Positions 1,734 through 24,746 are shown, counted from the stretch's first letter. The stretch is 64,000 bases of DNA from IMGVR_UViG_3300027747_002221:62001-126000, one strand, 5' to 3'. Notes: generated by a model not told the origin, from the sequence alone. Translations and numbers: made by a program.

Positions 1734-1734
1734 A

Positions 1735-2655: not shown

Positions 2656-3358
2656 AGTATTTTGATAGATTAGTAATGTCTGTTTTAATGAAATAGAATG
2701 CTTCCTTGACGTCTTCTTCTAAGGACTCATACAATTCTGCCATCTCTCTTTCACCTTGATCCTTATTATAATTGGTTCCTGGCGGATGGTCAATAGTATG
2801 TGAATAATCTCGGAGAACTGGTCTTTGACTTAAAAAGCTAAGAGCAGAATAAATTATATCAAAACTCCAACCCATCTTATACGGAGAGAAATCAATTCCT
2901 TTTTCATCTGCCATATTAATAATGTCTTTGTGGATAAACCAACAAGTACAATCTGTATCTGCTACCATTTTAAGATTGGGTTCATCTATATTAAATTGTA
3001 GATCAACTCTGGAAGAATTATACCAAGTATAATCCACATTGGGTGCATAGATTCCCCATTCATAAGTTTCAAAATATTTTTCTGCATCAGCATATAATTG
3101 TTTCCAATTATCGTATGATGCATCACCCTGAATATGAAATAATACGTCACCGTTTTCTTTCTTAAAGATTTCCAAAGCTTTCATAAACTGAGCAGTAAAA
3201 TAACTATCCTCGCCTATGTTATGCCAATCAGGATCGTTATGGTCATCATCACTATTAATTACGATTGGTTCAACTCCCATCCCTCTGAGTTGATCTATCT
3301 TTTTAATTGTTTTGTCGTATTGTCCGCGCCAATTAAATATAAATGTAAGTATTTTCAT
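2627..3358 (-). CDS. Putative glycosyltransferase (GT-A-like)
   Basis: 243 aa; N-terminal beta strand, FHIQGDA (DxD-like), GWSFD, late DHPPG His; sugar-cluster context. Confidence 0.5.
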   Translation of the reverse strand: MKILTFIFNWRGQYDKTIKKIDQLRGMGVEPIVINSDDDHNDPDWHNIGEDSYFTAQFMKALEIFKKENGDVLFHIQGDASYDNWKQLYADAEKYFETYEWGIYAPNVDYTWYNSSRVDLQFNIDEPNLKMVADTDCTCWFIHKDIINMADEKGIDFSPYKMGWSFDIIYSALSFLSQRPVLRDYSHTIDHPPGTNYNKDQGEREMAELYESLEEDVKEAFYFIKTDITNLSKYYEDQLSTNE

Positions 3359-4236
3359 TATTCTCTCATGTCTTGTTTGTTATAAACTACAGACTCAAAC
3401 CAATTTAAAAAATTGTTCAAGATCATATAATCTCTAGGGATGCCTGCTGCTAAAGGAGGCGCTGATATTACTCTGTTATATAGATCCTCATCTGAATCTA
3501 ATCTCATAACAAAATCAATTACTTCTTCATGATTACTAAAATCATGTACATTAATAAAAGATTGAATATTAAAGTCTGATGCTATTGTAGGGCTGCCCCA
3601 ATAGATAGGAATAGTTCTAGCATAAAAAGCATGGAGAATTTTTTCTGTGGCATAACCGGGATAAGAACCAGACTCAAAACATATATTAAATTTACGCTTG
3701 GTCAAGAAATTAATCTTAGCAAGTTCCCCGTCTAGTTTGCTACCTATATTATTGTATAAGCCTCCGCCGCTATCTACCTTCTTTATCTTATTCAATTCTT
3801 TAAAAAATTCATTACGCTCTTCGCAACCTGGATTGCTAACAACAAAAGAACAAAAATCTGTTTTTAGAATTGGATTATGCTCGCCGAGAATGTGATAATA
3901 CTTATGCCCAGTGTTGTGAATAGCATCTAATGCCCACATATAAACTACGAACAAGGGTAAGCGGAAATGCCAATTACTATAGTTATGATCAAAAGTAATT
4001 GCATAATGACAGTCATAATTGTCTGGTCTTTGATTCTCACCTGTATAGAAAATCTTAACACAATCCGATTTACTAAATTTTTTATTATTTGTTCCAAAAT
4101 TACTATCACCGAAGATCAAATAATCAGGATTTTCATTATCTATTTCCACATCAAATCTATTTGCCAATAGACTATGGAAGAATTGTGATATATGCTCGTG
4201 CGTGTCAGCAAAACCTAATTTTATTTTTTTACTCAT
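3358..4236 (-). CDS. Alpha-1,3/4-fucosyltransferase (GT10)
   Basis: KIFYTGEN, FCSFVVSN, VDSGG, KFNICFES.SYPGYATEKI..AF.A.TIPIYWG = GT10 motif as in Helicobacter FucT. Confidence 0.9.
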   Translation of the reverse strand: MSKKIKLGFADTHEHISQFFHSLLANRFDVEIDNENPDYLIFGDSNFGTNNKKFSKSDCVKIFYTGENQRPDNYDCHYAITFDHNYSNWHFRLPLFVVYMWALDAIHNTGHKYYHILGEHNPILKTDFCSFVVSNPGCEERNEFFKELNKIKKVDSGGGLYNNIGSKLDGELAKINFLTKRKFNICFESGSYPGYATEKILHAFYARTIPIYWGSPTIASDFNIQSFINVHDFSNHEEVIDFVMRLDSDEDLYNRVISAPPLAAGIPRDYMILNNFLNWFESVVYNKQDMRE

Positions 4237-4245
4237 TTAATTTCC

Positions 4246-5028
4246 TCAATACTTATTTCTATACTCAATTTGTATCCATCGTCTATCATTCCATTCACAA
4301 TTTATTTGTGCATCATGTTTTATCATAATATTATGAAAGAATAGATCTGCAGATGTTTGATCAACCATACTATCTACAATGCATTGGAAAAAACTTCCTA
4401 CTGCGTGTATCTCTTTTGCTCGCTTTATTAAGTCGACAAAATCAAAAACATTATTAGTTACACCCATTTGTATTTTAACTACTTTAAGATTTTTGTGTTT
4501 AGATACTTGATCTAAAGCTAACGGTAACTGAGAACTAATACTACTATTATCATGTACTAGAATAAAATCTTCTTCATTAGTTAATTGCTTATAAATTTCT
4601 AAGGATCTTTCTGTGGATTCGGGAATTTTAGCATGAGTATATCTAATAGAGAAATGCATGCCAGCCAATTCATAGAATTGACGATCAAAGTTTGTAGCAA
4701 TGTTTCTCATCTCTAACTCACCCTTAGAATTCATTACTATTCTTCCTGGATAGTATAATAAAGGATCACCGACACCTATATACTCAGATTTAGTATCATC
4801 CACTATCTTTTGTATTAGATGCCTACCATTAAGATTGATGTCTATATCTGGCAATGAAACAGGTTCTACTTTATCAAATCCTTTATATAGAGCATTTATA
4901 GATTCACTAAACATCTTTATATGAGGCACATAAACTTTGTCATAGTCTTCGGTAAACGAATGAACCATGCCATTAGTAATGATATGGTCACCTAACCCAG
5001 TATGAGTGTGTAATACTAAAGAGTTCAT
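4246..5028 (-). CDS. Hypothetical protein, putative glycosyltransferase
   Basis: N-terminal HTGLGDHII and C-terminal AKEIH..SFF resemble GT-B fucosyl/heptosyl-transferase-like motifs. Confidence 0.45.
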   Translation of the reverse strand: MNSLVLHTHTGLGDHIITNGMVHSFTEDYDKVYVPHIKMFSESINALYKGFDKVEPVSLPDIDINLNGRHLIQKIVDDTKSEYIGVGDPLLYYPGRIVMNSKGELEMRNIATNFDRQFYELAGMHFSIRYTHAKIPESTERSLEIYKQLTNEEDFILVHDNSSISSQLPLALDQVSKHKNLKVVKIQMGVTNNVFDFVDLIKRAKEIHAVGSFFQCIVDSMVDQTSADLFFHNIMIKHDAQINCEWNDRRWIQIEYRNKY

Positions 5029-5780
5029 CGGTTACCTAAGATACCCGATGCTTTAATTTTTTCTGAAGGCGCACAAAGCATATTTTGCCAATCCACAATG
5101 TGATATTCATAATCCGTTAGACTAGACAATTCTTTTTTAATATTATCCTCGCCTGCCATATTATACTCAATCCAAATCCATGGCCTATGTGCTTCTATAG
5201 TATTAATTGCTCCACGTAATGCTTCACATTCAAAACCTTCAATGTCTAATTTTAAAAAGTCTAATCTAGGAAGTTCCATATAGTCTAAAGGAATAACATC
5301 TACAGAACTATAATCTAACGACCCAGCTGAGTCTGTTGCTTTAATAGTAACCATACCATAATCAGTATTTAAACTATAGTCTACAGGAGATACTTCAGCA
5401 GTAGTTTGTTCACTACCTATTCCTAAATTATATAAAAAGACATTTGGTAATTCATTTAACGCAATGGTTCCGCCCAACGCATAGAATAATTGTTTCTGTG
5501 GTTCAAAAGAAACAACTTTGCTATTTTTTGCCTTTACCATTTGTGCCACAGGAATAGTAAAGAATCCCATATTAGCTCCGCCGTCCACAATAATAGCATT
5601 TTCGGGCAAAGTGTTTATGATTGCGAAGATATTATTTAATTCTTGCTCTATGTGTGTTTTGCCTGTCATCAGCATTACAGATGCCGGATTAGGTGTTGGG
5701 TGACCGGGTGTGCAATTTCTAGGCAAAATAAATTTACCATATGCAGAATCCATTACCATAAAATTGCCTAGTGTGCTCAT
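5025..5780 (-). CDS. FkbM-family SAM-dependent methyltransferase
   Basis: VDGGANMG, SFEPQ, LKLDIEGFE..AL.GA. Confidence 0.88.
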   Translation of the reverse strand: MSTLGNFMVMDSAYGKFILPRNCTPGHPTPNPASVMLMTGKTHIEQELNNIFAIINTLPENAIIVDGGANMGFFTIPVAQMVKAKNSKVVSFEPQKQLFYALGGTIALNELPNVFLYNLGIGSEQTTAEVSPVDYSLNTDYGMVTIKATDSAGSLDYSSVDVIPLDYMELPRLDFLKLDIEGFECEALRGAINTIEAHRPWIWIEYNMAGEDNIKKELSSLTDYEYHIVDWQNMLCAPSEKIKASGILGNR

Positions 5781-6712
5781 ATCATTCCTCGATCTTTTTT
5801 ATACCAATCAATAGTAAGTTTTAACCCGTCGTCAAAACTTGTTTTAGATTTCCATCCCAATTTTTTTAATTTAGTGTTATCTAGTTTGCGTCTTGGTTGT
5901 CCGTTGGGTTTATCCTTATTCCAAACAACCTTGCCTGTAAATCCAAAAGCTTTTGTTAATTTGGTTACAAGTTCTTTGATAGTTAATTCTTCATCACTTC
6001 CGATATTAACAAATTCTTTTTCATTATAATTTTGCATTAACCAAAAGCAAGCATCTGCCAAATCATCTACATATAAAAACTCTCGCGTTGGAGTTCCGTC
6101 ACCCCAACATTCAATACTATCCTCACCATTCTTTATCGCATTATGCATCTTAGTAATAATGCCAGGAATAACGTGCCCATGTTCTGGAATAAAATTATCA
6201 TTAACACCATATAGATTCGCGGGCATACAACTAATAGCATTAAACCCATACTGACGTCTGTAGTATTCGCACATTCTTAAGCCAGCAATTTTAGCAAGAG
6301 CATATCCCTCATTCGATGGCTCAAGAGAAGCTGTAAGAAGATATTCTTCTTTGATAGGTTGAGGAGTAATTTTTGGATAGATACAAGCAGAACCTAAAAA
6401 CAATAATTTTTTAGCGCCACTTCTATATGCCGCATCTATAACATTTGTTTGAATAATTAAATTATCATATATGAATTCTGCGGGGTTAGTTGAATTCCAA
6501 CTAATGCCACCAACTTTAGCAGCACTTAAAATTACATACTCAGGTAACTCTATACTAAAAAAATTCTTGACAGCCCTTTGATCTCGAAGATCTAATTCTG
6601 CCTTTGTCCTAAGAATTAGATTTGTATAACCTTCTTCTTTTAATTTTCTAACAATCGCAGATCCAACTAATCCTTTATGGCCTGCTACATAAATTTTACT
6701 ATTTTTTTCCAT
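5777..6712 (-). CDS. fcl: GDP-L-fucose synthase
   Basis: VAGHKGLVGSAI, AAKVGGI, LGSACIYP, YALAK, NLYG, WGDG.PTREF; start trimmed to MEKN with AAGGA RBS. Confidence 0.95.
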   Translation of the reverse strand: MEKNSKIYVAGHKGLVGSAIVRKLKEEGYTNLILRTKAELDLRDQRAVKNFFSIELPEYVILSAAKVGGISWNSTNPAEFIYDNLIIQTNVIDAAYRSGAKKLLFLGSACIYPKITPQPIKEEYLLTASLEPSNEGYALAKIAGLRMCEYYRRQYGFNAISCMPANLYGVNDNFIPEHGHVIPGIITKMHNAIKNGEDSIECWGDGTPTREFLYVDDLADACFWLMQNYNEKEFVNIGSDEELTIKELVTKLTKAFGFTGKVVWNKDKPNGQPRRKLDNTKLKKLGWKSKTSFDDGLKLTIDWYKKDRGMI

Positions 6713-6719
6713 AAAATCC

Positions 6720-7733
6720 TTAACCAAAATTAATACACATATCCTCTACCAGAGCATCGAAAGTATATTCTGGCTCCCAACCTAAAACGCTCTTAGCTTT
6801 TGAGGGATCACCGAGCAAAGTCTCAACTTCAGCTGGTCTAAAATATTTAGGATCAACTCTAATTATAACTTTACCCGTATTAACATTAATGCCTACTTCA
6901 TTTAATCCTTCGCCTTCCCAACGAATTTTTAGATAGAAATATGGGGCACATTTCTCAATAAAGTCCTTAACCGAATATTGTTTACCTGTAGCAATGACAA
7001 AGTCTTCTGGTTTATCCTGTTGTAACATTAACCACATTGCCTTAACATAATCCTTAGCATGCCCCCAATCTCGTAAAGCATTCAGATTGCCCATATACAA
7101 ACACTCTTGGCGACCTGCACTAATTGCTTCTAAACCATCTACAACCTTCTTTGTGACAAAATTAAATCCACGGCGAGGAGATTCGTGATTAAATAAAATA
7201 CCAGAACAACAAAACATATCATATGATTCACGATAATTCTTTGTGATCCAGTATGCATATAATTTTGCTACACCATATGGCGATCTAGGATAAAACGGAG
7301 TTGTTTCTTTTTGTGGAGTTTCCTGAACTAATCCAAACATTTCTGAGGTAGATGCTTGATATATTTTACAAGTCCTATCCATATTTAAAATTCTAACTGA
7401 TTCTAATATTTTAAGGGTACCTAACGCATCAACAGTTGCAGTATATTCAGGAGTTTCAAATGAAACCTTAACATGACTTTGTGCAGCTAGATTATAAATT
7501 TCCGAAGGATTGTGTTTCTTCAAGACATTCATAATGGATAAGGAATCTGTTACGTCACCATAGTGAAGATGTAATTTTGGATTATTGTAGATGTGGTCGA
7601 TGCGACCTGTGTTCATTGAAGAGCTACGACGGATAATACCATGTACTTCGTAGCCCTTAGATAATAATAATTCTGCAAGATAAGAACCGTCTTGCCCAGT
7701 TATGCCTGTAATCAACGCAACTTTGTTGTCCAT
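6720..7733 (-). CDS. gmd: GDP-mannose 4,6-dehydratase
   Basis: [52 protein letters not shown]. Confidence 0.97.
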
Positions 7734-15454: not shown

Positions 15455-15904
15455 TTAGCCTTCGTAAATAGCTGAGTTAGCACCATGTTCTGCACATTCA
15501 ACTTTAACACAATAACAACGATTATTAGATGCATTTCTGATTAACTGATCCGCAAAGTTAAATGCATGTTCAGCAAACTTCTCTACACCCACCCCATCAA
15601 AGATGCGGATCTCTGCCAAGTCCAAGGCTTCAAGTTCCTGGAACTTGGCCAGATGTGGATCTGCTTTATCCAGGGCCAGCTTATGATCAAAGTGATCTTC
15701 CAACCATGCCTTGAGTGGTTTAAGACCACCAAAATCTACTGCCCAATTTTTGTTGTCTAGGGCATCGCATCCAAATGTAAAAGTAAATGCTAAACTATAA
15801 CCATGCAGCAAATGGCAATGACTATGATCTGCGTTAGGTTGTCTAAATACAGCACTTAAACCAATGTTGTGCCCGTAATGTTTTGTTGAGAAATATTTAG
15901 CCAT
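15455..15904 (-). CDS. queD: 6-carboxy-5,6,7,8-tetrahydropterin synthase
   Basis: C..LHGY, WAVDFGGLK, FDH, terminal E in VECAEH. Confidence 0.9.
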   Translation of the reverse strand: MAKYFSTKHYGHNIGLSAVFRQPNADHSHCHLLHGYSLAFTFTFGCDALDNKNWAVDFGGLKPLKAWLEDHFDHKLALDKADPHLAKFQELEALDLAEIRIFDGVGVEKFAEHAFNFADQLIRNASNNRCYCVKVECAEHGANSAIYEG

Positions 15905-15924
15905 CTCTTGCCTCTAATGAGTAA

Positions 15925-15980
15925 GTTTGATGACATGCAGAATTTATATAGCGGGGTGAATGTCATTTAAAGACCGCTTT
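15925..15980 (-). promoter_or_regulatory. Candidate preQ-type riboswitch / H-type pseudoknot upstream of queD
   Basis: P1 AGCGG/CCGCU; loop AUGACAU pairs with downstream AUGUCAU (7 bp); A-rich tail AUAUAAA. Confidence 0.5.
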
Positions 15981-16978
15981 TTTAATCTATGATAATATTT
16001 AGAGTTATACCAATCGTATAACGTTTCTATAATATCATTTAATTTTCTTTTAGGTTTCCACCCAGTATCTGCTAATAATTTTTCTGCACTAGCAATTAGT
16101 GTTGCCGGATCGCCTTTTCTTCGTACATCTATATGACATATAATTCGGTCGTTTATTGCTTCGTTATTGATTAAAAAATCTTCAACTGCAGTAAACACCT
16201 CAAGATTCGAATGACCCTTTAATGTTCCTATATTATATATCCCTTCAATATCTTTGTCAATAGCTAAAACATGAGCATCGGCTATATCTGTTACATGGAT
16301 ATAATCTCTAACACAAGTACCATCTCGTGTAAGAAAGTCTGCGCCATTAATAGTAAAATCATTACCTTGTAAAGCGGCTTCAAACAATTTCGCAAATATA
16401 TGTGTGGCGTCGGGTTCTTGCCCATGTACCCCACCTTCAACTGCGCCACATGCATTAAAATATCTATATGACACATACTTCAATCCGTATGCAACTTTAA
16501 ATCTCTCTAACATCATTTCTGTCATTAGTTTAGATTCACCATATGGAGATATTGGTTTAGTTTCAGAAGCCTCAGTCAATATCATACCTATCGGCTCACC
16601 ATAAACTGCAGCACTGCTACTAAAAACAAACTTAATATTAGGTGCCCACCGACGTATGTAATCTAAATACTTCAATGTTTTTGCCACATTATTATTAAAA
16701 TATTCTGAAGGATTCTCTACACTCGGTCCTACTAAACTTGTTCCTGCACAATGTATAACAGCAACAGGGTTGCGCTCAAGGTGCTCCAATGAAAACGGGT
16801 GTGTAAAACATTCATTGACAAATTGATCTACATAATATTCCATATGCTTGTGTAGTTTTCTTTTGTCAATACCCACTACTTTATAACCATGTTCTTTTAA
16901 TGCAATACATGTAGCGCCACCGATATAGCCGGCAGCACCTGTTACTATAACAGTATTAGTATTTTGATTCTGAGACAT
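15944..16978 (-). CDS. galE: UDP-glucose 4-epimerase
   Basis: VTGAAGYIG, FSSSAAVYG, PYGESK, RYFNACGA, DGTCVRDYIHV.D. Confidence 0.92.
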   Translation of the reverse strand: MSQNQNTNTVIVTGAAGYIGGATCIALKEHGYKVVGIDKRKLHKHMEYYVDQFVNECFTHPFSLEHLERNPVAVIHCAGTSLVGPSVENPSEYFNNNVAKTLKYLDYIRRWAPNIKFVFSSSAAVYGEPIGMILTEASETKPISPYGESKLMTEMMLERFKVAYGLKYVSYRYFNACGAVEGGVHGQEPDATHIFAKLFEAALQGNDFTINGADFLTRDGTCVRDYIHVTDIADAHVLAIDKDIEGIYNIGTLKGHSNLEVFTAVEDFLINNEAINDRIICHIDVRRKGDPATLIASAEKLLADTGWKPKRKLNDIIETLYDWYNSKYYHRLKKRSLNDIHPAI

Positions 16979-18125
16979 TGTTTCTATAATCCTTAGTATT
17001 ACGATACCATTTCTCAGATCCATCAATCATAATGTCAATACATCTGTCAATAGTTCCAGTAGTCCAATTAGATAATTGTCCCATTTTCTTTCTTGGTTTA
17101 ACTAATAAATTATCTAGTTTATTTTTAACATCTTCCATAGACCAAGGAATATATAAACATTCCGCGTCATTAGCAAATGACTCAGGGAAAGATCTATAGG
17201 CGGGATACAAACAATTTGTACCAAGTGCATCTGCTTCTGATGCTGTGTTACTTACCCAATCTTGTAAAGCGCAATTAAACAATACTCGAGAATCTGCCAA
17301 CAATTCATAATATTCATTCTTTTTAAGATTTTCATAGATCTTAAAATTAGAAGTTTTTTCTAATTCCCTTGCGCGATCTAAATACTTTTGATCGTTACTA
17401 CGTAATGGACCGCCCGATAAAACAGCAAACTCTACATCTCGATTATACTTACCATAGTCCTCAACTAGATCCATAAAGAATCCTGGTTGCTTTTCCTGAT
17501 CGAATCTAGCAGCAAACACCACTCGCTTTTTACGAGTAATGAATGGTTTAATTTCAGCAATACGACTTTGTACTTCATCTTTATCAAATGCTAATCCGGA
17601 GATATTATAGATTGGTGCTTTCCAACCTGCGATCCTCATATGTGCAACCATCTCTTCATTCGATGCAAGAATACCTGTTACCCAAGTATCACACATTTTT
17701 TCATAATGCCCCATCCATTCCTGCATATCCCATACATGAAGGAAATCATCTGGGTCTATTGTCTGTGCAAGACAACGAACATAAATCTCAGGTTGATATT
17801 CCCAAGGTAATTGATCCACAATGTAGGGAATTGCTTCAATGCCGGGCGTAAACATATCCTCAAAGAAAATAGTATCGTTCCAGGTAATCTCACCCGACTT
17901 CATTTTTTTAACAAGATTAGCCATCTGCGTTAAAGAATAATAACTACGACCATGTGCATCAAGCACCTGACCTGTTACGATAGATTTGGAATCGTCAAGA
18001 ATATCACCGTGTATAATTTCATAATCAATTCCTCTGCGTTTAAATGCCGCTTCACTCCATTGCTGAAGTTGTAAAGTATATCGACCTTCATAAGGCTCTA
18101 AACCCATATAATATAACTTACTCAT
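16956..18125 (-). CDS. Glycosyltransferase (GT-B, GT4-like)
   Basis: VFAARFDQEKQP, YY.LL..S.VLFN.ALQD...EA.ALG...L.P.YRSFPE. Confidence 0.8.
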   Translation of the reverse strand: MSKLYYMGLEPYEGRYTLQLQQWSEAAFKRRGIDYEIIHGDILDDSKSIVTGQVLDAHGRSYYSLTQMANLVKKMKSGEITWNDTIFFEDMFTPGIEAIPYIVDQLPWEYQPEIYVRCLAQTIDPDDFLHVWDMQEWMGHYEKMCDTWVTGILASNEEMVAHMRIAGWKAPIYNISGLAFDKDEVQSRIAEIKPFITRKKRVVFAARFDQEKQPGFFMDLVEDYGKYNRDVEFAVLSGGPLRSNDQKYLDRARELEKTSNFKIYENLKKNEYYELLADSRVLFNCALQDWVSNTASEADALGTNCLYPAYRSFPESFANDAECLYIPWSMEDVKNKLDNLLVKPRKKMGQLSNWTTGTIDRCIDIMIDGSEKWYRNTKDYRNNVSESKY

Positions 18126-18517
18126 TATCTCTCCTCAAAAACAAGTCTGCATCCATTCTCACCATCTTCTGATACTTCTATAGTATAACATCTTGAAGGC
18201 CATTGCTCAAGACATCTGGCATACAATTCTCTTGCCATCATTTCGCATGATTTATAATCTAATTGTAATGTGCCATCAGAATACCATCGTTCCATAATAC
18301 GCTTTGCCTGAATAAATTCAACATCTCTGTTATCATGAAACACTTCCATTTCAACTTTAAAATGAAAAATATGCCTATGAGGCGTACCTAAAAAGGAAAC
18401 ATCTAACCAATCACCTGTAGCTAACTTGGGGTCAGTTGCAGCTGCAGGATACTTATGGATACCTTCTTTACGAAAGGTTGCCCATATATAACTTTTATTT
18501 AGTGTAAACATACTCAT
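18125..18517 (-). CDS. QueD-paralogous T-fold protein (DpdL-like, putative CDG decarboxylase)
   Basis: EGIH, LGTPHRHIF (LxxxHRHxF rather than QueD CxxxHGH), SCEMMA, VSEDGENG; adjacent to dpdA. Confidence 0.7.
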   Translation of the reverse strand: MSMFTLNKSYIWATFRKEGIHKYPAAATDPKLATGDWLDVSFLGTPHRHIFHFKVEMEVFHDNRDVEFIQAKRIMERWYSDGTLQLDYKSCEMMARELYARCLEQWPSRCYTIEVSEDGENGCRLVFEER

Positions 18518-19803
18518 CCAAATAACTCCTCAAGTGAAGATGGAGCCACAGCATTGACTGGCTCCGAATCCATAAATTTACCGACATGCTTTTCCCAATA
18601 AAGAAAATCCTCGTTTGTCTTTACATCAAATAATGTAGAGTATTCGTTTTCACAACCTTTGTCTCTGCAGAATCTTAAGAAATTTTCTTTTGAATTCATT
18701 AGTTCAGAAACATCCATTGTAAAGTTATGCACATTAGTTAAAATAAATGCCAATCTTGCTTTCATTACATCAATGAATTTGCCACCTTGTTCTAAATATA
18801 GACCAACCGCAATATTCATTAACTTGTGATATTCCTCGGGCGTATATTCTGTGCCACATACAGAATTAATCTCACTAACAACTGTTCTATAAATGTTAGA
18901 ATATTCTCTTCCCATTTTTACTGAAGAACCGCCATAATCACCTGGGCTATTTTTCTTACAGTGTGAGAAGTAAAACAATCCATTGTCCAATGACATAGAA
19001 TGTGTTGTAGAATCATACGAGATATCTACACCATCATATAGACCAGTTTGACTAAATAGCAAATAAGGTAAAATACGTTTAAGTGCACCTACACCTAAGA
19101 CGTGCAAATGAAATGGTCTTTCGAATGGAACAGAATTAACATAAAATGCCCGTTTAACATCTTCAAGGGGTCCCATACCCAATGCAGCTGATCCCATGGC
19201 AACACCACCGATACGATGATGTAGTTCTTTAGGTATTTCAGCTAACATACATTCTGCCCATTTAGCATAAGTATCTGCACCCGAACCTTGCAAAATGGCA
19301 AATGGTTTACACTTGCTCTTTAATGAATCAAATTTTAGAATTTGATCTTTAACATTTCTGCCTGTTGCTCTCGCATAAGACTCAAAATTTTCCATGTCAA
19401 CATATCTACGCTTAGTATCAATCTTTGCTGATACACCACTAGCAGATGTGGATTTTACTGGAATCTCATCAAACGCCATACCAATGTCAGCATATGTGCC
19501 TTGATTCTCATATACTTTGTTTCTTGTCTCTGGAGTATTCTGCAATCCTCGAGTAATAATTTGCAATCCCCCAGAGTCAGCATGAATATTTTTAATTGCT
19601 GGTCTAAACTTCTGCAACTTATTACCAAAGTTCTTTTCTGTAAATCCATTATACAATAATGAGAATTGGTGATTATTTTTATTATGAACAGTTTTATTAA
19701 TTAGATCAATAATCATTTGTAATGTCTCTGGATCATTACATTGTTCTGCACCCAGTCTCAGATATGCTGGACCTGATATTACATATTCTAAAATTTTACT
19801 CAT
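18514..19803 (-). CDS. dpdA: DpdA-like DNA 7-deazaguanine transglycosylase (TGT fold)
   Basis: TGT motifs in order: HADSGGLQ, FDEIP, ILQG, GVAMG, HLHVLG, SYDSTT; no tRNA-TGT zinc motif; que-gene context. Confidence 0.8.
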   Translation of the reverse strand: MSKILEYVISGPAYLRLGAEQCNDPETLQMIIDLINKTVHNKNNHQFSLLYNGFTEKNFGNKLQKFRPAIKNIHADSGGLQIITRGLQNTPETRNKVYENQGTYADIGMAFDEIPVKSTSASGVSAKIDTKRRYVDMENFESYARATGRNVKDQILKFDSLKSKCKPFAILQGSGADTYAKWAECMLAEIPKELHHRIGGVAMGSAALGMGPLEDVKRAFYVNSVPFERPFHLHVLGVGALKRILPYLLFSQTGLYDGVDISYDSTTHSMSLDNGLFYFSHCKKNSPGDYGGSSVKMGREYSNIYRTVVSEINSVCGTEYTPEEYHKLMNIAVGLYLEQGGKFIDVMKARLAFILTNVHNFTMDVSELMNSKENFLRFCRDKGCENEYSTLFDVKTNEDFLYWEKHVGKFMDSEPVNAVAPSSLEELFG

Positions 19804-21164
19804 GCGAATAAGCTTTCTAAAGTATCTGTTTCTTTTTCAGATGGTATGAAGTTTGGATCTTTTGCCAAGTATGTGTCTTTGTCTGTATAAATTATATTAT
19901 ACTTTGACTTATTTGTCAATACACTTTTGACATCATCTATTGCTAAGAATGACCTATTTAGTATGCGAACAAAGTCAATATATTTAATTTCGGAATACTC
20001 ATTTATTTTTGCAGAATCTGATTTTGATGTGACCGAAGGGGCGTATGATTCTACAAAGTCTTTCCAATACTTTGCTGTGCCCGAATCCAAATCTTTAATA
20101 TATTGTAGTGCACCATTACCATACCATTTTTCAGGTTTCATTCCATAAACAGCCTTAATAGCTTCGCCTGCTTCTGATACTGGTTTTCTAATATAATATT
20201 TTTTATCGAAGTTTGTTACCCATTCCGATTTGTCAATAACAACACATGGCATATGACCAAGACATTCAAAGAATGTAAATGGATAATTTTCTCGTAAAGA
20301 AGGATTAAAATGAACTTTTGCAGATTTAATAAAGTCTACTTTTTCGTCACCAACAACTCCTGACTTAATTTCATAATTAGTAATTTCCAATTCTGCGAGA
20401 CGAGCTTCGAATTTTTTCTTACCATTACTATTAGTAATAATCTTTGCAGGCAATCCTGTTTCTTTTATAATTTTAAGAAATGCTTCAGGATTTTTTCTAT
20501 CTTCCCAACGACCAATATAAAGTACACCCTCTCTTGTTCCATTATTTTCTACAAGGAGACCTCGTTCAGACATAGGCATAGGTAATTTTTTAACATTGAT
20601 TCCCCCGTTGCCTGAGATTTCATTCACGTTACGATCAGATTGCGTACCAATATAACAATTTTCAAGATTCATTAAATTATTAAAGAACTCATTGCAACTT
20701 TCACTAAACACCCCTTTGAATTTTCTAGTGTCACGGAACACCATACTTTCCTCATGTGTGTAGAATACAACTGGGATATATTTGTTTAGATCAAAAGATA
20801 AAGCAGCAGGCATTGCTTCTAATGAATTACATACTATCATATCATATAGATTAGTATTAAATGCTTTCATTATAGCATTCCTAAAATTGAGCATCTTCTC
20901 AAAATTAATAGAATCAGTAAATGCAAATGTGCCGGTATGATTCTTATATGACATAGGCGCATCCGAAGTGATTATGTTAGCACCTAAAGACTCAACCAGT
21001 GCACCGAAATCGTTACTTGACGCCTTATCTAAAATTAAATCAACTTTCCAATTTAAGTCTTTAGCCATCTCAGTAAAGCCTTTAGCAAATTGCCCTATAC
21101 CTCCGTGGGGTACAAGATGTTGATCACTAATACAAAAAGCAATACGCTTACTATATATTTTCAT
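19800..21164 (-). CDS. Glycosyltransferase (GT-B, GT4-like)
   Basis: PHGGIGQF, LYIGRWEDRKNPE, NPSLRENYPFTFFE. Confidence 0.82.
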   Translation of the reverse strand: MKIYSKRIAFCISDQHLVPHGGIGQFAKGFTEMAKDLNWKVDLILDKASSNDFGALVESLGANIITSDAPMSYKNHTGTFAFTDSINFEKMLNFRNAIMKAFNTNLYDMIVCNSLEAMPAALSFDLNKYIPVVFYTHEESMVFRDTRKFKGVFSESCNEFFNNLMNLENCYIGTQSDRNVNEISGNGGINVKKLPMPMSERGLLVENNGTREGVLYIGRWEDRKNPEAFLKIIKETGLPAKIITNSNGKKKFEARLAELEITNYEIKSGVVGDEKVDFIKSAKVHFNPSLRENYPFTFFECLGHMPCVVIDKSEWVTNFDKKYYIRKPVSEAGEAIKAVYGMKPEKWYGNGALQYIKDLDSGTAKYWKDFVESYAPSVTSKSDSAKINEYSEIKYIDFVRILNRSFLAIDDVKSVLTNKSKYNIIYTDKDTYLAKDPNFIPSEKETDTLESLFA

Positions 21165-21166
21165 AC

Positions 21167-21676
21167 TTATTCACCTAGTATTTTGATTAGATGTTTAGTC
21201 TGATGCATAGCATCATCTAAAGCATTATGATATGTTCCTTCTCTTGCATCTGCAGGTACCCAATGGAATAATGCTTTAACTGTGCGATAGCAACGATCAT
21301 CCCAGCATTTCCATGGAGGTTCTCTATCAGTGTTAAAATACGCATTTGCTAAAATTGTATTATCGAAGACTGCACCGTTGCCCCATACAGGTAGGCTCTT
21401 AGGTCCGAACCATTCCTCAAATTCATCTAGTGCTTGTTTTAGTGGGATATTATTGCGGGTAAGTTCTCGCAGTGCTTCTTTATTTTGTTCAGACCACCAT
21501 TTGACTGTCTCTTTTGAGATATGCATTCCTGCATCTTTACAAGTCTTAATGTCTACAGTACAATAAAAAGTATCTAGTATTTCTTTACCTTCAAATTTTA
21601 CTGCACCTATTGAGCAAATAGCAGCATTAGATCTTGTTGACATTGTTTCCAAATCAACCATAATATTAACTGTCAT
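21167..21676 (-). CDS. DEDDh 3'-5' exonuclease (DexA / RNase AS-like)
   Basis: MVDLET, IGAV.F, WGNGA.FD, R..RT, HNALDDA. Confidence 0.88.
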   Translation of the reverse strand: MTVNIMVDLETMSTRSNAAICSIGAVKFEGKEILDTFYCTVDIKTCKDAGMHISKETVKWWSEQNKEALRELTRNNIPLKQALDEFEEWFGPKSLPVWGNGAVFDNTILANAYFNTDREPPWKCWDDRCYRTVKALFHWVPADAREGTYHNALDDAMHQTKHLIKILGE

Positions 21677-21684
21677 ATATTGTC

Positions 21685-22620
21685 CTATTGTAATTCTTTC
21701 ACCCATTGTTCCACGTAGTTAGACCAATCATAAGATTTGGCATGTTCTCTTATACTATAACATCTTTCTCTATATTTTTCTGGTCTATCCCTATAGTATT
21801 TTAAAGCATTTACTGCAAATTCCATAAATTCGTTTTCTTCGATTGGTACAGAAATGCCCCCGAAAATACCAACTTTATCGTTCCACCATCCGACACTAGT
21901 ACCAATAACTAATTTACCTGCGGCACCTGCTTCTAATAAAGGCAAACTACCACCTTCTTCAAAACTAGATACAATAATAGCATCAACTGCTTTATAAAAA
22001 CCTGGCATAGTAACAAAACTATTATGATAATTACTTGCTACCCTAAATTCTAACCCTGCTTTTTCTGTAGCTTCACTTGCAAGGTAACCTCTTTTTTTAT
22101 ATCTAGGTTGCGATATAGGACTGTCTATCATTTCTTGAGTAAATTCATTGCGCCCATGATATGCACTGGCATACCCTACTACACGAAGTTGTTCATTCGG
22201 TTCAGTATAAAAAGAATTATAAGTAATACCGATAGGATAAACGACAGGTTCTCTAGGTATACCTATGGTTTTACTATAATCTTTTAAAAAATTACTAACA
22301 ACACCAAAGTTTTTAACATGATTAAAATCTTCGAAACCATATTTATAACCATATTCAGTTAAATCCAAAGTAGCATGACCTATAACAATACACCGCTCTA
22401 AAGGAATACTAAAAGAATTTTTTAATACTGCAAGCCCGTGGGGGTTTGTTACCCAGAAATCTATTAACAAATCTAATTCACGTATTTCTTCTACAGAATA
22501 TATTTTATCCCAAGGAAGTAAATTACAGTTATATCCATAGTTCCAAAGATATTTAAATAGACCATAATGAATAGATCCCAGTGCCCATTCATTATCAAAT
22601 AAAAAAACTACATTTTTCAC
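21685..22620 (-). CDS. Glycosyltransferase (GT-B-like)
   Basis: KKRG, FYKAVDAIIVSSFEEGGSLPLLEAGAAGKLVIGT.VG, YDWS. Confidence 0.8.
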   Translation of the reverse strand: MKNVVFLFDNEWALGSIHYGLFKYLWNYGYNCNLLPWDKIYSVEEIRELDLLIDFWVTNPHGLAVLKNSFSIPLERCIVIGHATLDLTEYGYKYGFEDFNHVKNFGVVSNFLKDYSKTIGIPREPVVYPIGITYNSFYTEPNEQLRVVGYASAYHGRNEFTQEMIDSPISQPRYKKRGYLASEATEKAGLEFRVASNYHNSFVTMPGFYKAVDAIIVSSFEEGGSLPLLEAGAAGKLVIGTSVGWWNDKVGIFGGISVPIEENEFMEFAVNALKYYRDRPEKYRERCYSIREHAKSYDWSNYVEQWVKELQ

Positions 22621-23297
22621 TTACCGCACATTCTTGCAATACTTAAAAATTCATTTCTTGCTGATGGATCTGTTTTAAATCCGCCACCTAAACGAACTGT
22701 AACTGTGGATGAACCTGTATCTTCAACCCCTCTAGATTTGACACAGTAATGTTGGGCGTCAATCATGACAGCAACATCCTCAGTATCAAGAATAAATTGA
22801 AGTGTATGAAAAATTTGTTCTGTTAGACGTTCTTGAATTTGCGGGCGTTTACTAAAATATTCTACAATACGATTGATCTTGGAGAGTCCAAGAACTCGTG
22901 CTTTCGGAACATATGCCACAGTAGCAACACCGTCAATTACTACAAAATGATGCTCACAATTGCTTTGAACATTTACATTTCTTTCTACAACCATTTCGTT
23001 GTAGTTCATTTTATTGTCTACTGTTGTACATTTAGGAAATGCATCATAGTCCAATCCCCAGAAAATTTCATTAACATACATCTTAGCAACACGGTTTGGT
23101 GTTTCTATTAGACTATCATCTGTTAAATCTAATCCCAATGTTCGCATAATAGTACTAAAAGCTTTTTCTATAAGTTCAATCTTTATTTTGCGATCTATAC
23201 CATTGTTTTCGTAAGGTGTTTCAACACCCATTTTAACTAGATGTTCATGAACCTTTAGACCAAGTTCAGAGTCAGTTTTTGTTTTGTTGTATGACAT
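22617..23297 (-). CDS. folE: GTP cyclohydrolase I
   Basis: ETP.RVAKMY, CEHH, GLSKINR, RPQIQERLT, HYCVKSRGV. Confidence 0.97.
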   Translation of the reverse strand: MSYNKTKTDSELGLKVHEHLVKMGVETPYENNGIDRKIKIELIEKAFSTIMRTLGLDLTDDSLIETPNRVAKMYVNEIFWGLDYDAFPKCTTVDNKMNYNEMVVERNVNVQSNCEHHFVVIDGVATVAYVPKARVLGLSKINRIVEYFSKRPQIQERLTEQIFHTLQFILDTEDVAVMIDAQHYCVKSRGVEDTGSSTVTVRLGGGFKTDPSARNEFLSIARMCGK

Positions 23298-23361
23298 TTT
23301 TGAATCCTTCCTTACACGGATATGATAATTGAATTTTGTTACCTTTGTGTAACATTATTAT

Positions 23362-23556
23362 TTATGCCTTTGCTTTAGCCTCAGCACGAGTATTTTTCTC
23401 TTCGGTAATCTCATTACGACGGGCTTTGACAGCTTTGGACAATTCTGCTAATGCCTTACGAGCACGGGTTCCTGCAGCACTATTGCCTTTGGTAAATTTT
23501 TCATTCTCAGTCTCATAAGATGCTAAGCTTGTTTTGATATCGTTATGTGCATTCAT
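23362..23556 (-). CDS. Histone H1-like (Hc1-family) small basic protein
   Basis: KF.KGN.AAGTRARKAL.EL......R.EI. Confidence 0.75.
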   Translation of the reverse strand: MNAHNDIKTSLASYETENEKFTKGNSAAGTRARKALAELSKAVKARRNEITEEKNTRAEAKAKA

Positions 23557-23584
23557 ACTATTTCCTTTTTGTTAATATTTTCAT

Positions 23585-24427
23585 TTATGTTCCCCATTCG
23601 TTTTTGAACAATGGGACTTGTAGTCTGTCACTATATCGCCAGCCTTTTTTCATTGCCAATTCTGCAACTGTTCTGTTATTAAGATTATAAAGTTCTGGAA
23701 CACCGCCACACGGCATAAGATATACAGGACCTTTAAAACCCTTTTTACTATATTCATTTACTGCTTGTTCCGCTTCTTCTGCATCTTCTTTAGTTGCTAT
23801 CACAAACTTCAAATAAGTAAAGCCAGTATTGTAATATTGTTGAACAACATCAGAGCAAATAGCATCTTCCCAACTCTCACCACTGATACTTAGTTTAGGA
23901 CTAACACTAAACGTCAGACAATGTAGGAAACGATGCTTCTTCCAATCATTTAAGAAAGTAACTAATTCAGATTCTAACAACTGTGTACCATTAGTTTCAA
24001 ATGTTATTTCTTGTAAGCCACGCATATTATCATGTGATAATAAATCGGGATAAGCACGTTGCCAACCTAGTAGCGGTTCACCACCCGTGATAACCAAATG
24101 CTCATCTTTCCAACGACCATGAGGGAGTAAATCGGTAATAGTATCAACAATAGTATTGGTGTCGAGAACAGGACTGAGATGTTTGAAGCGTGGATCCCAA
24201 CTCGCATAACTATCACATCCAGTAGATACAAGTGGTAGTGATTTATAAGATTTAAACTTTTCTCCGTCCACCGCAAAACGCTCAACACTTTTTTCTCCCT
24301 TGGACATTCCAAAGCCATCACATTTAAAGTTGCAACCGAATGTTCTCAAAAAAACAGAGGGTACGCCCATATAACGACCCTCGCCCTGTATACTATAAAA
24401 TAGTTCAGATATTTTCAGCTTGCTCAT
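23585..24427 (-). CDS. queE: 7-carboxy-7-deazaguanine synthase (radical SAM)
   Basis: ELFYSIQGEG, FLRTFGCNFKC...(insert)...GCDS, ITGGEP, ETNGT, SVSPK; start trimmed to MSKL. Confidence 0.92.
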   Translation of the reverse strand: MSKLKISELFYSIQGEGRYMGVPSVFLRTFGCNFKCDGFGMSKGEKSVERFAVDGEKFKSYKSLPLVSTGCDSYASWDPRFKHLSPVLDTNTIVDTITDLLPHGRWKDEHLVITGGEPLLGWQRAYPDLLSHDNMRGLQEITFETNGTQLLESELVTFLNDWKKHRFLHCLTFSVSPKLSISGESWEDAICSDVVQQYYNTGFTYLKFVIATKEDAEEAEQAVNEYSKKGFKGPVYLMPCGGVPELYNLNNRTVAELAMKKGWRYSDRLQVPLFKNEWGT

Positions 24428-24686
24428 ATATTGTAGACCATTCCCTAAGTTTATCAAATTTTCTATGTTGCGCTTCTTTGACTTGTAGATAATCTACAAT
24501 ACCATTATCGTAGCATAGTTCAATCATTGCTATAAGATCACCAATTTCTTCAGTCAATCGTTGTCGATTGGTAGCACCATTATATTCACCATCTATTCCA
24601 AAGCGTAAACATTTTGAAATTGCTTGTGTTACTTCTGCACATTCTTCTTGAAGAATAAGCATAACTTCTTTTTTAGAATCATTCAT
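24405..24686 (-). CDS. MazG-like nucleotide pyrophosphohydrolase
   Basis: EECAEV.QAISK..RFG, EEIGDL. Confidence 0.8.
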   Translation of the reverse strand: MNDSKKEVMLILQEECAEVTQAISKCLRFGIDGEYNGATNRQRLTEEIGDLIAMIELCYDNGIVDYLQVKEAQHRKFDKLREWSTIYEQAENI

Positions 24687-24717
24687 AATATAAAGTATTT
24701 AGTTGTTAATATTGTCT

Positions 24718-24746
24718 ATTATATAATATTTAGTCAATCATGTCAA
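24718..24746 (-). promoter_or_regulatory. Consensus sigma70 promoter TTGACA-17-TATAAT heading the deazaguanine cluster
   Basis: Minus strand TTGACA tgattgactaaatatta TATAAT, ~30 nt before mazG-like ATG. Confidence 0.8.

Follow-up and report, generated by a model that had tools for sequence, protein, structure and literature searches.

A T4-like environmental phage carries the known gene set for replacing guanine in its DNA by 7-deazaguanine, and this set is interwoven with a phage-only family of predicted glycosyltransferases (GTs) and with an enzyme that makes UDP-galactose. In the sample examined, this GT family (represented here by GT3) was always found beside deazaguanine-synthesis genes, which suggests that a still undescribed sugar-decorated deazaguanine occurs in DNA. 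The core of the system (FolE, QueD, QueE, the proposed 7-carboxy-7-deazaguanine (CDG) decarboxylase DpdL and a DpdA2-type DNA transglycosylase, without QueC) is already known, since it corresponds to the predicted 2'-deoxy-7-deazaguanosine (dDG) pathway of Cellulophaga phage phiST. What is new is the association of this core with GT3. A glycosylated deazaguanine is therefore well motivated, although there are no chemical data for this phage or for any phage bearing GT3, and no paper describing such a base in DNA was found.

Organization of the cluster

The window analysed is a stretch of 64,000 nucleotides (IMGVR_UViG_3300027747_002221:62001-126000). The first-pass annotation had described a co-oriented and mostly overlapping run of twelve genes behind a consensus sigma-70 promoter, and this observation is confirmed, as all twelve genes are present, on the minus strand, behind a perfect promoter. 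The features are as follows.

24718-24746, minus strand: perfect sigma-70 consensus promoter (TTGACA-17-TATAAT), at the head of the cluster
24405-24686, minus strand: small MazG-like NTP pyrophosphohydrolase
23585-24457, minus strand: QueE, radical-SAM CDG synthase
23362-23556, minus strand: Hc1-like histone H1-like DNA-binding protein
22617-23297, minus strand: FolE, GTP cyclohydrolase I
21685-22620, minus strand: GT1, GT4-like glycosyltransferase (only the C-terminal domain is recognised)
21167-21706, minus strand: Rv2179c-like DEDD 3'-5' exonuclease
19800-21164, minus strand: GT2, GT-B glycosyltransferase, distant paralogue of GT3
19891-19919, minus strand: second perfect sigma-70 consensus promoter, inside the 3' end of GT2
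18514-19803, minus strand: DpdA, DpdA2-type DNA-guanine transglycosylase
18125-18517, minus strand: DpdL, T-fold paralogue of QueD and proposed CDG decarboxylase
16956-18125, minus strand: GT3, DpdL-associated GT-B (divergent GT4-like) glycosyltransferase of 389 aa
15944-16978 (or 17026), minus strand: GalE, UDP-glucose 4-epimerase
16232-16260, minus strand: third perfect sigma-70 consensus promoter, inside galE and upstream of queD
15455-15904, minus strand: QueD, 6-carboxytetrahydropterin synthase

The three promoters are 12/12 matches to the consensus, and the second one, just upstream of dpdA, reads into dpdA-dpdL-GT3-galE. Five genes (GT2-dpdA-dpdL-GT3-galE) have overlapping stop and start codons. 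The junctions are as first described: GT2/dpdA and dpdA/dpdL overlap as ATGA, dpdL/GT3 as TAATG, GT3 overlaps galE by at least 23 nt and folE/GT1 overlap as GTGA.

The deazaguanine core

Profile searches support the precursor enzymes. FolE matches its Pfam family (E 5e-62) and phrog_2197 (E 1e-74). QueD matches Pfam PTPS (E 1.9e-13) and phrog_2389 (E 6.6e-39), and its HCxxxHGY motif is conserved among relatives. QueE matches phrog_2076 (QueE-like, E 3.6e-53) and gives partial NCBIfam QueE hits; its cluster cysteines C42, C46 and C81 follow a conserved Cx3Cx34C pattern, and its real start is probably the ATG located ten codons further in. No QueC was found in the cluster.

DpdA shows 31.7 % identity (E 1e-47) to the DpdA of the Vibrio Schizotequatroviruses, whose family was validated experimentally (PMC10516641). 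The top 38 PDB hits of its AF2 model are all TGT, QTRT1 or DpdA 7ui4, the TGT signature DSGGxQ (here DSGGLQ) and D264 are invariant, and NCBIfam Tgt is matched at E 8e-5. The protein previously called a T-fold paralogue is DpdL, as it carries LGTPHRHIF, which fits the LxxxHRHxF signature (PMC10516641), and it is homologous to phiST gp040 and to the DpdL of phage ACP17. The pathway therefore does not stop at CDG: DpdL is present and QueC absent, so that the predicted base is 7-deazaguanine (DG), which has no obvious hydroxyl or amine handle at C7.

The MazG-like gene (Pfam MazG at 25 bits, above the 22-bit cut-off; phrog_4856, E 1e-24) is variable among relatives, although a MazG also sits next to DpdL in phiST. 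The Hc1-like protein (Pfam, E 2.4e-15) is present in only some relatives and its membership in the system is uncertain. The exonuclease (Pfam, E 7.6e-47) is conserved in relatives, and phiST has a DEDDh exonuclease beside QueD, but no role in the system is known for it.

The three glycosyltransferases are not equivalent

The matches of the three GTs to Pfam are all below the gathering scores. Their identity as GTs therefore rests on profile and fold evidence, which was obtained for GT3 and GT2 only. GT3 is core to the system. Its AF2 model (pLDDT 93.6) has a GT-B fold and its best PDB matches are retaining GT4 enzymes. Furthermore, R207 and K212 are invariant, and these residues and D289-x7-E297 align with the R/K and EX7E motifs of PglH, GlgM and MshA. 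GT2 is related to the GT3 family by profile-profile alignment (hhalign probability 96.9 %, E 1.7e-10), displays conserved HGGIGQF and GRWExRKNP motifs, is translationally coupled to dpdA and is syntenic in phage BUCT-ZZ01. However, its linkage is weaker, and it is present in most but not all close relatives (it is absent from loci L036-L040 of the relatives compared). GT1 gives sub-threshold hits to Pfam Glyco_trans_1_4 and Glycos_transf_1 and PDB GlgA/GT1-family hits at E 1e-5. It is a sporadic accessory gene, found in only 3 of about 58 close relatives, and its only cultured homologues are in cyanophage S-CAM7, which gave no dpdA or dpdL hit. The trisaccharide considered in the first-pass annotation is therefore speculative.

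GalE reaches 273.6 bits on the TIGR01179 equivalog, above the 262.3 cut-off. A GalE above this cut-off also follows GT3 in three further lineages (loci L014, L045 and L063). A distant locus, L090, adds sugar-1-P nucleotidyltransferases and further sugar-modifying genes.

Linkage of GT3 to DpdL

Co-occurrence of the GT families with dpdA across phages had been put forward in advance as a criterion, unlinked homologues counting against the proposal. When neighbourhoods were examined, the linkage proved to be to DpdL, not to DpdA: DpdA2 phages that carry QueC (Ps15, phi-Grn1) or lack DpdL (pf16) have no GT3 nearby. By contrast, DpdL lies within 1.6 kb of GT3 in 76 of 76 IMG/VR loci with usable flank, with a median gap of 7 bp, and a GalE-like gene lies downstream in 73 of 74. 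As the 80 IMG/VR loci are related to one another, they count as a few lineages and not as 80 independent observations. Among 50,697 records searched, 29 are DpdL-positive, and these include all 18 cultured-phage records with a full-length GT3-family hit (ACP17, PA5oct-like, BCSR5, Phosso, BUDD/X1, BUCT-ZZ01). In ACP17, BUDD, BCSR5, PA5oct, Phosso and BUCT-ZZ01, the GT lies inside the deazaguanine cluster. Six of seven metagenomic family members at 27-40 % identity have DpdL nearby, and the seventh, on a 3.2-kb contig, has QueE next to it. The only GTDB hits are MAG contigs with the same DpdL-GT3-GalE-FolE module. Therefore, every context that could be inspected, across many unrelated phage lineages, has DpdL or other deazaguanine genes beside GT3.

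These data bear on the possibility that the DNA carries plain dDG and that the GTs and GalE are auxiliary genes acting on host LPS or capsule or on virion proteins, merely located in a hypervariable slot between gp55 and gp47. Indeed, phiST DNA contains plain dDG (PMC10516641) and phiST has DpdL but no GT3 nearby; RHph_I1_18, Bakedbeans and Ahp1 also lack GT3 within 10 kb of DpdL. GT3 is therefore not needed to make dDG and is an add-on to the pathway. In addition, the phage carries a second, unrelated glycan cluster at 411-7733 (DegT, a GT10 fucosyltransferase, FkbM, Gmd and an Fcl-like gene), so that GTs are common cargo here and GT1 looks like such cargo, and galE, GT1 and GT2 are mosaic among near-identical relatives. 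However, this reading, considered unlikely, cannot explain why the GT3 family sits beside DpdL or deazaguanine genes, often with overlapping codons, in T4-like, jumbo (PA5oct, Phosso), Busanvirus, Xanthomonas and Burkholderia phages and in the 27-40 % identical metagenomic relatives, nor why it is essentially absent from bacterial genomes.

A second possibility is that GT3 has an accessory role in making or delivering the base and leaves no sugar in DNA, for example by forming a transient or soluble glycosyl-DG intermediate used by DpdA as donor, or by detoxifying or sequestering free DG, the final base being dDG. GT3 is tightly coupled to DpdL, which is predicted to act on the free base (PMC10516641), and resembles small-molecule GT4 enzymes such as SenB, BshA, MshA and LmbT. 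Furthermore, expression of ACP17 dpdA plus dpdL in E. coli gave no dDG, and the authors suggested that other enzymes may be needed (PMC10516641); the gene lying between dpdA and dpdL in ACP17 is the GT3 homologue. Nevertheless, phiST reaches full dG replacement without GT3, TGT-family enzymes use free bases, and keeping a dedicated GalE and paralogous GTs fits a stable glycan product better than a transient one. This alternative is also considered unlikely.

Two other alternatives appear very unlikely. DpdL, GT3 and the SDR-family gene could form a pterin-glycoside branch drawing on FolE, like cyanobacterial biopterin glucoside, as T-fold enzymes bind pterins, FolE is adjacent in many loci and the cyanobacterial UDP-glucose:tetrahydrobiopterin glucosyltransferase 5ze7 is among the structural matches of GT3 (rank 46, E 5.5e-10). 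However, 5ze7 scores no better than dozens of other GT4 enzymes, the SDR is a bona fide GalE by the equivalog cut-off and not a sepiapterin reductase, and the module always travels with QueE and, where recognisable, DpdA, in phages of non-cyanobacterial hosts. Moreover, DpdL lacks the catalytic Cys of QueD/PTPS (PMC10516641) and phiST DNA shows that the DpdL pathway ends in dDG. Alternatively, the GTs could glycosylate another base, such as 5-hydroxymethyl-pyrimidines as in T-even phages, which is the established precedent for DNA glycosylation in T4-like phages, and be only co-located with the deazaguanine genes. Some BFVD structural neighbours are annotated as DNA alpha-glucosyltransferase (TM about 0.5), but similarity to these is no better than to generic GTs, no hydroxymethylase was seen in the annotated parts of the window, and GT3 follows DpdL into phage lineages unrelated to T4.

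Comparison with known systems

The dDG system of phiST (FolE, QueD, QueE, DpdL, DpdA3; PMC10516641) shares with this cluster the precursor pathway, the DpdL with the LxxxHRHxF motif, the lack of QueC, and a MazG-like gene and a DEDD exonuclease nearby. However, the transglycosylase is DpdA2-like here and not DpdA3 (phiST did not appear in the DpdA search), and phiST has no GT3, GT2 or GalE in its cluster. The DpdA2 systems of Vibrio Schizotequatroviruses (nt-1, VH7D, phi-Grn1), which put dPreQ0, dPreQ1, mdPreQ1 or dG+ into DNA, have a homologous DpdA and an adjacent FolE, but carry QueC and QueF (and DpdM or ArcS) and have no DpdL and no GT3; their reported modification levels are low (PMC10516641).

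In T-even phages, alpha- and beta-glucosyltransferases produce glucosyl-hydroxymethylcytosine. In both cases, a phage-encoded GT-B enzyme using a UDP-sugar would decorate a non-canonical base as an anti-restriction measure, and two paralogous or parallel GTs occur in one phage. However, the base here is a purine analogue with no hydroxymethyl handle, and there is no specific sequence or fold relationship beyond GT-B. The presence of a basic DNA-binding groove like that of T4 AGT/BGT had been suggested beforehand as something to look for in the models; GT3 is acidic (pI 5.06; family median 5.8) and its closest solved structures are small-molecule GT4 enzymes. Action on DNA is thus not indicated, and the proposed analogy to T4 is not shown; glycosylation of the free base before insertion is at least as likely.

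In huimycin and dapiramicin biosynthesis, the glycosyltransferase HuiG is reported to glycosylate a 7-deazapurine base, a UDP-sugar being put on a free 7-deazaguanine-type base made by FolE, QueD and QueE, and the huimycin gene-cluster family carries Pfam PF13439 glycosyltransferases (10.64898/2026.04.15.718813). The sugar is attached to the 2-amino group. Huimycin is an actinomycete secondary metabolite, the acceptor is O6-methyl-preQ0 and no DpdL, DpdA or DNA is involved; no sequence comparison with HuiG was made. Galactosyl- and mannosyl-queuosine of eukaryotic tRNA are glycosylated 7-deazaguanine derivatives made after insertion by a TGT-family enzyme. They occur in RNA and not in DNA, their sugar is on the cyclopentenediol of queuosine, which is absent here, and the enzymes are eukaryotic; this parallel was not tested.

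A putative glycosylated deazaguanine in phage DNA

Globally, the interpretation given in the first-pass annotation, i.e. that the base inserted by DpdA is further glycosylated, is partly supported. The cluster is a 7-deazaguanine DNA-modification system, and at least one GT (GT3), together with GalE, belongs to it. Homology shows the precursor pathway from GTP to CDG by FolE, QueD and QueE, the presence of DpdL without QueC, which predicts DG as the base made, and a DpdA2-type transglycosylase exchanging guanine in DNA for the deazaguanine base. The remainder is only inferred from conserved gene linkage, and this explanation is regarded as somewhat more likely than not. In this view, the cluster is an early-expressed DNA-hypermodification module in which GT3, a phage-specific GT-B enzyme with intact donor-binding motifs, uses a UDP-hexose, most likely UDP-galactose or its GalNAc counterpart supplied by the adjacent GalE, to glycosylate the DG-derived base, either on the free base before its insertion by DpdA or on dDG already in DNA. 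Where present, GT2 (and rarely GT1) would add a further sugar or serve other sequence contexts.

The attachment atom was not identified. Because GT3 tracks DpdL, whose product has C7-H, and not QueC or QueF, the leading guess is a linkage at the pyrrole carbon C7, with N2, as in huimycin, as the alternative; however, a C-glycoside made by a GT4-like enzyme would be unprecedented chemistry. PA5oct DNA, whose chemistry is unknown, resists cleavage at G-containing restriction sites and is hit by nucleases that sense hypermodified DNA (PMC12191111). The outcome of the proposed pathway would be a glycosyl-7-deazaguanine in virion DNA that blocks restriction and other DNA-targeting defences.

Gene content and organization of the cluster

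The window, which is 100 % identical to part of the 222-kb contig IMGVR_UViG_3300027747_002221, encodes T4-like proteins, including major head, portal, sheath, large terminase, baseplate hub, UvsW, a gp55-like sigma factor and gp46/gp47. The phage is known only as this uncultured IMG/VR contig, and a megablast search of the 9.3-kb region against GenBank phages returned nothing. Between the gp55-like gene and gp47 lies a minus-strand run of twelve genes, in the order MazG-like, QueE, Hc1-like, FolE, GT1, a DEDD exonuclease, GT2, a DpdA-like gene, a T-fold protein, GT3, GalE and QueD, supported by Pfam, PHROG and NCBIfam searches. This is exactly the list given by the first-pass annotation, whose observation is confirmed. 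The features of the window that are discussed below by position are the following.

24746-24718, minus strand: perfect (12/12) TTGACA-17-TATAAT promoter at the head of the run
19919-19891, minus strand: second perfect match, just upstream of dpdA
16260-16232, minus strand: third perfect match, upstream of queD
23585-24457, minus strand: QueE
23362-23556, minus strand: 64-aa homologue of the chlamydial histone H1-like protein Hc1 (Pfam E 2.4e-15)
411-7733, minus strand: second, separate glycan gene cluster

The three promoters lie on the coding strand within 8.5 kb, two of them inside coding sequence, and look like T4-style early promoters subdividing the cluster. GT2, dpdA, dpdL (the T-fold gene), GT3 and galE are joined by overlapping stop and start codons (ATGA, ATGA, TAATG, and an overlap of at least 23 nt). 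The Hc1-like gene, although located inside the modification cluster, is present in only some relatives. The glycan cluster at 411-7733 encodes a DegT-type aminotransferase, a GT10 alpha-1,3-fucosyltransferase, an FkbM methyltransferase, an Fcl-like epimerase/reductase and GDP-mannose 4,6-dehydratase, with several unannotated ORFs between them, and points to GDP-fucose or amino-sugar chemistry with no identified target.

A known 7-deazaguanine core

The genes for CDG synthesis, FolE, QueD and QueE, are all present. The HCxxxHGY motif of QueD is conserved, as are the catalytic-motif cysteines of QueE, which are spaced Cx3Cx34C (C42, C46, C81) and conserved in about 40 relatives, an unusually long insert between the second and third Cys. 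The 130-aa T-fold protein carries LGTPHRHIF, i.e. the LxxxHRHxF signature that replaces the CxxxHGH of QueD and defines DpdL, the proposed CDG decarboxylase of Cellulophaga phage phiST (PMC10516641). This motif is conserved in 55 relatives, the profile matches phiST gp040 at E 2.6e-41, and the protein is also homologous to the ACP17 DpdL. The decarboxylase activity itself is only proposed in the literature, where heterologous tests failed (PMC10516641), and was not assayed here. No QueC hit was found among the cluster ORFs.

The 429-aa DpdA-like protein has no Pfam hit, the TGT family included, and a phmmer search with it against PDB sequences found nothing, but several lines identify it as a DpdA2-type transglycosylase. 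It is 31.7 % identical (E 1e-47) to the transglycosylase of the Vibrio Schizotequatroviruses, and members of that DpdA2 family were shown to insert preQ0 or preQ1 into DNA (PMC10516641). It keeps the TGT signature DSGGxQ, as an invariant DSGGLQ, and an invariant Asp264 (D264). As profiles gave only weak TGT hits, its structure was predicted, and the AF2 model (pLDDT 84) finds only TGT, QTRT1 and bacterial DpdA (7ui4) among its best 38 PDB matches. With FolE, QueD, QueE and DpdL present and QueC absent, the predicted base is 7-deazaguanine (DG); whether virion DNA contains any 7-deazaguanine derivative was not measured. This corresponds to the phiST dDG pathway, driven here by a DpdA2-type rather than a DpdA3-type enzyme.

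Three non-equivalent glycosyltransferases

Searches of PDB sequences with GT2 and GT3 by phmmer found nothing and profiles gave only weak GT4 hits, so that structure prediction was also used. GT3 (389 aa) is predicted with high confidence (AF2 pLDDT 93.6, pTM 0.91) to adopt a two-Rossmann-domain GT-B fold. Foldseek matches SenB, GlgA, BshA, PglA, PimA and MshA with probability 1.00 and E as low as 1e-12, the nearest solved structures being retaining GT4 enzymes with small acceptors, such as SenB, BshA, MshA, LmbT and PimA. Across 57 family members at 27-57 % identity, R207 and K212 are invariant and D289-x7-E297 is nearly so. These residues align with the diphosphate-binding R/K motif and the EX7E motif of PglH, GlgM and MshA, with Asp replacing the first Glu. 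GT3 therefore looks catalytically competent, although transfer to a defined acceptor was not assayed and the protein is too divergent to pass Pfam's gathering threshold for Glycos_transf_1 (25.2 bits against a 26.4-bit cut-off), with no NCBIfam hit. It belongs to a divergent family of its own, with 826 representative clusters at E<=1e-3.

GT2 (454 aa) is a distant paralogue of GT3 (hhalign probability 96.9 %) with a canonical HGGxG N-terminal loop, whereas GT1 shows only a C-terminal GT4-like signal.

A relationship of GT3 to the T4-type DNA glucosyltransferases, and glycosylation of another base such as hmC or hmU, were also examined. Proteins annotated as DNA alpha-GT appear only at TM about 0.5, no better than generic GTs, and neither BGT nor AGT appears among the top PDB hits. 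No hydroxymethylase was seen in the annotated parts of the window, the remaining 158 kb of the contig not having been searched, and the idea of hmC glycosylation was set aside. Inspection of GT models for a basic DNA-binding groove like that of T4 AGT/BGT had been put forward in advance as a test. GT3 is acidic (pI 5.06), but net charge and pI are only weak evidence on the question of DNA versus free-base acceptor, and electrostatics were not computed.

Linkage of the GT3 family to DpdL

The co-occurrence of these GT families with dpdA across phage genomes had been named beforehand as a criterion for the proposed system. The GT3 family was found only beside deazaguanine-synthesis genes, nearly always DpdL, and this is the key result. 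In the 80 IMG/VR loci retrieved with GT3, all 76 with usable flank have DpdL next to it, at a median distance of 7 bp, and in 73 of 74 a GalE-like gene follows. As these loci are related to one another, more distant sequences were examined. In GenBank phages, the 18 records with a full-length GT3-family match all belong to the 29 DpdL-positive records, out of 50,697 searched. They are the eleven PA5oct-like jumbo phages, ACP17, BUDD and X1, BCSR5, Phosso and BUCT-ZZ01. In each of these phages the GT lies inside the deazaguanine cluster; in ACP17 it lies between dpdA and dpdL, and BUCT-ZZ01 has the same GT2-dpdA-dpdL-GT3 order as the window. In Xanthomonas phage BUDD, a protein annotated as PAPS-reductase family, of unknown role, sits between FolE and the GT3-dpdA-dpdL-queE block (L093, the BUDD locus: 3245-3739).

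Of seven metagenomic representatives at 27-40 % identity, six have DpdL nearby (five of them adjacent), and the seventh, on a 3-kb contig, has QueE adjacent. A profile search (nine-sequence alignment) of one representative genome for each of 185,579 bacterial and archaeal species found the family only on six contigs (L104-L109), binned into GTDB MAGs of Phycisphaerae, Rickettsiales, Haliscomenobacter, Chitinophagales and Chloroflexi. Those with enough flank carry the same DpdL-GT3-GalE-FolE module, so they are probably phage contigs mis-binned into these MAGs. Conversely, DpdA2 phages that use QueC (Ps15, phi-Grn1) or lack DpdL (pf16) have no GT3. Some DpdL phages also lack it nearby, namely phiST, RHph_I1_18, Bakedbeans and Ahp1. 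In Vibrio phage Bakedbeans, DpdL is the C-terminal part of a 383-aa protein (gp176; locus L088: 9221-10372), whose N-terminal region of roughly 260 aa has no family match. GT3 is thus an optional extension of the DpdL branch and not a partner of DpdA as such. A census of GT3, DpdL, QueC and DpdA-subfamily co-occurrence over all complete phage genomes, with phylogenetic correction, was not made. The linkage data argue strongly against the GTs being unrelated glycan cargo and against glycosylation of another base.

In the more distant DpdL-GT3-GalE loci no DpdA2 is recognisable. A Pfam search of candidate DpdA-like ORFs next to GT3 in distant loci gave nothing apart from a faint TGT hit in BCSR5, and no transglycosylase was identified in the group of loci L061-L082. 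The neighbours in these loci (L063: 6680-7837, 12310-13359 and 13373-14524; L067: 12640-13932) instead include two radical-SAM/SPASM proteins, a GMP-reductase/IMPDH-like protein and a xanthine/uracil permease, which is reminiscent of nucleotide-level deazapurine chemistry, as in the tubercidin pathway. A GT3-DpdL gene fusion was also sought, as evidence for a shared small-molecule substrate. One GT3-family member of 655 aa (P0160; locus L110: 1888-3855) has an extra C-terminal region of about 250 aa, but this region has no Pfam match and matches nothing known; a DpdL gene lies about 0.7 kb upstream.

Sugar supply and mosaicism of the sugar genes

The epimerase encoded after GT3 reaches 273.6 bits on the TIGR01179 GalE equivalog model (cut-off 262.3 bits), and GAAGYIGG and YGESK, corresponding to the GxxGxxG and YxxxK motifs, are visible in its translation. 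The cut-off is also passed in three further lineages, and a distant locus (L090) adds sugar-1-phosphate nucleotidyltransferases, a GT2-family enzyme and more sugar-modifying genes. The sugar supply is also linked.

Among close relatives, GT3, dpdA and dpdL are conserved, while galE, GT1 and GT2 are swapped. In the relative L004, for example, GT3 is 100 % identical but galE 74 % and GT1 70 %. More generally, when L004, L006 and L007-L012 are compared with window positions 15944-22620, relatives whose GT3, dpdA and GT2 are 96-100 % identical have galE at only 68-74 % and GT1 at 70 %. GT2 comes in allelic classes of about 50 % and about 75-100 % identity and is replaced in the relatives L036-L040. 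GT1 occurs in 3 of about 58 close relatives, and its only cultured homologues are in S-CAM7, which gave no dpdA or dpdL hit. This mosaicism suggests recombinational diversification of the glycan part.

Proposed mechanism

Homology shows the conversion of GTP to CDG by FolE, QueD and QueE and the presence of DpdL and of a DpdA2-type DNA transglycosylase, whereas the decarboxylation of CDG to DG by DpdL is a proposal of the literature, which also reports dDG, with an [M+H]+ of 267, in phiST DNA (PMC10516641). What follows is inferred: GT3 would use a UDP-hexose supplied by GalE to glycosylate the DG-derived base, and GT2, and rarely GT1, would extend or diversify the glycan. The acidity of GT3, its resemblance to small-molecule GTs and its coupling to DpdL, which is thought to act on the free base, lean towards action before insertion rather than on DNA, although the data do not distinguish the two. 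DpdA2 is reported to be promiscuous for substituents at C7 (PMC10516641). The attachment atom was not identified; dependence on the DpdL product, which has C7-H, suggests the nucleophilic pyrrole carbon, N2 being the alternative. The huimycin glycosyltransferase HuiG is reported in 10.64898/2026.04.15.718813. In huimycin, the sugar is attached at N2.

An accessory role of GT3 that leaves no sugar in DNA was considered as another explanation, and a pterin-glycoside branch was considered and set aside. The proposal of the first-pass annotation, that the cluster makes a sugar-hypermodified deazaguanine, is partly supported. The deazaguanine core is already known, whereas the dedicated DpdL-associated glycosyltransferase family with GalE is, as far as could be found, undescribed, and makes a glycosylated deazaguanine a concrete, testable prediction. 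Full-text searches found no report of a glycosylated deazaguanine in DNA, although most subscription journals were not covered and this absence is not proof. Two published observations fit the hypothesis. ACP17 dpdA plus dpdL gave no dDG in E. coli, and the authors suspected missing enzymes (PMC10516641). PA5oct DNA resists enzymes with G in their sites and is attacked by nucleases that sense hypermodified DNA, while its chemistry is undetermined (PMC12191111).

Possible impact of a glycosylated deazaguanine

In its most far-reaching form, which the evidence does not rule out but which is held only tentatively, DpdL and the GT3 family would make a previously unknown class of DNA hypermodification, a glycosylated 7-deazaguanine. 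It could be a C7 C-glycoside, extended in some phages to a di- or trisaccharide by GT2 and GT1, and would be widespread in freshwater and marine T4-like phages and in cultured phages such as PA5oct, ACP17, BCSR5, Phosso, BUDD/X1 and BUCT-ZZ01. The family is very abundant in metagenomes, with about 8,000 close relatives scored in one search, and several cultured phages carry the module, including BUCT-ZZ01, which grows on the laboratory strain Synechococcus elongatus PCC 7942.

If the inference holds, this would be the first sugar-bearing purine analogue in DNA and would join the two best-known phage anti-restriction chemistries, deazaguanine replacement and base glycosylation. It would also explain why the ACP17 dpdA plus dpdL reconstitution failed and say what the unknown G modification of the therapeutic-candidate jumbo phage PA5oct is. 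Furthermore, it would define a new glycosyltransferase family, possibly with unusual C- or N-glycosylation chemistry on a heteroaromatic base, and predict new targets for type IV restriction enzymes and glycosylase defences.
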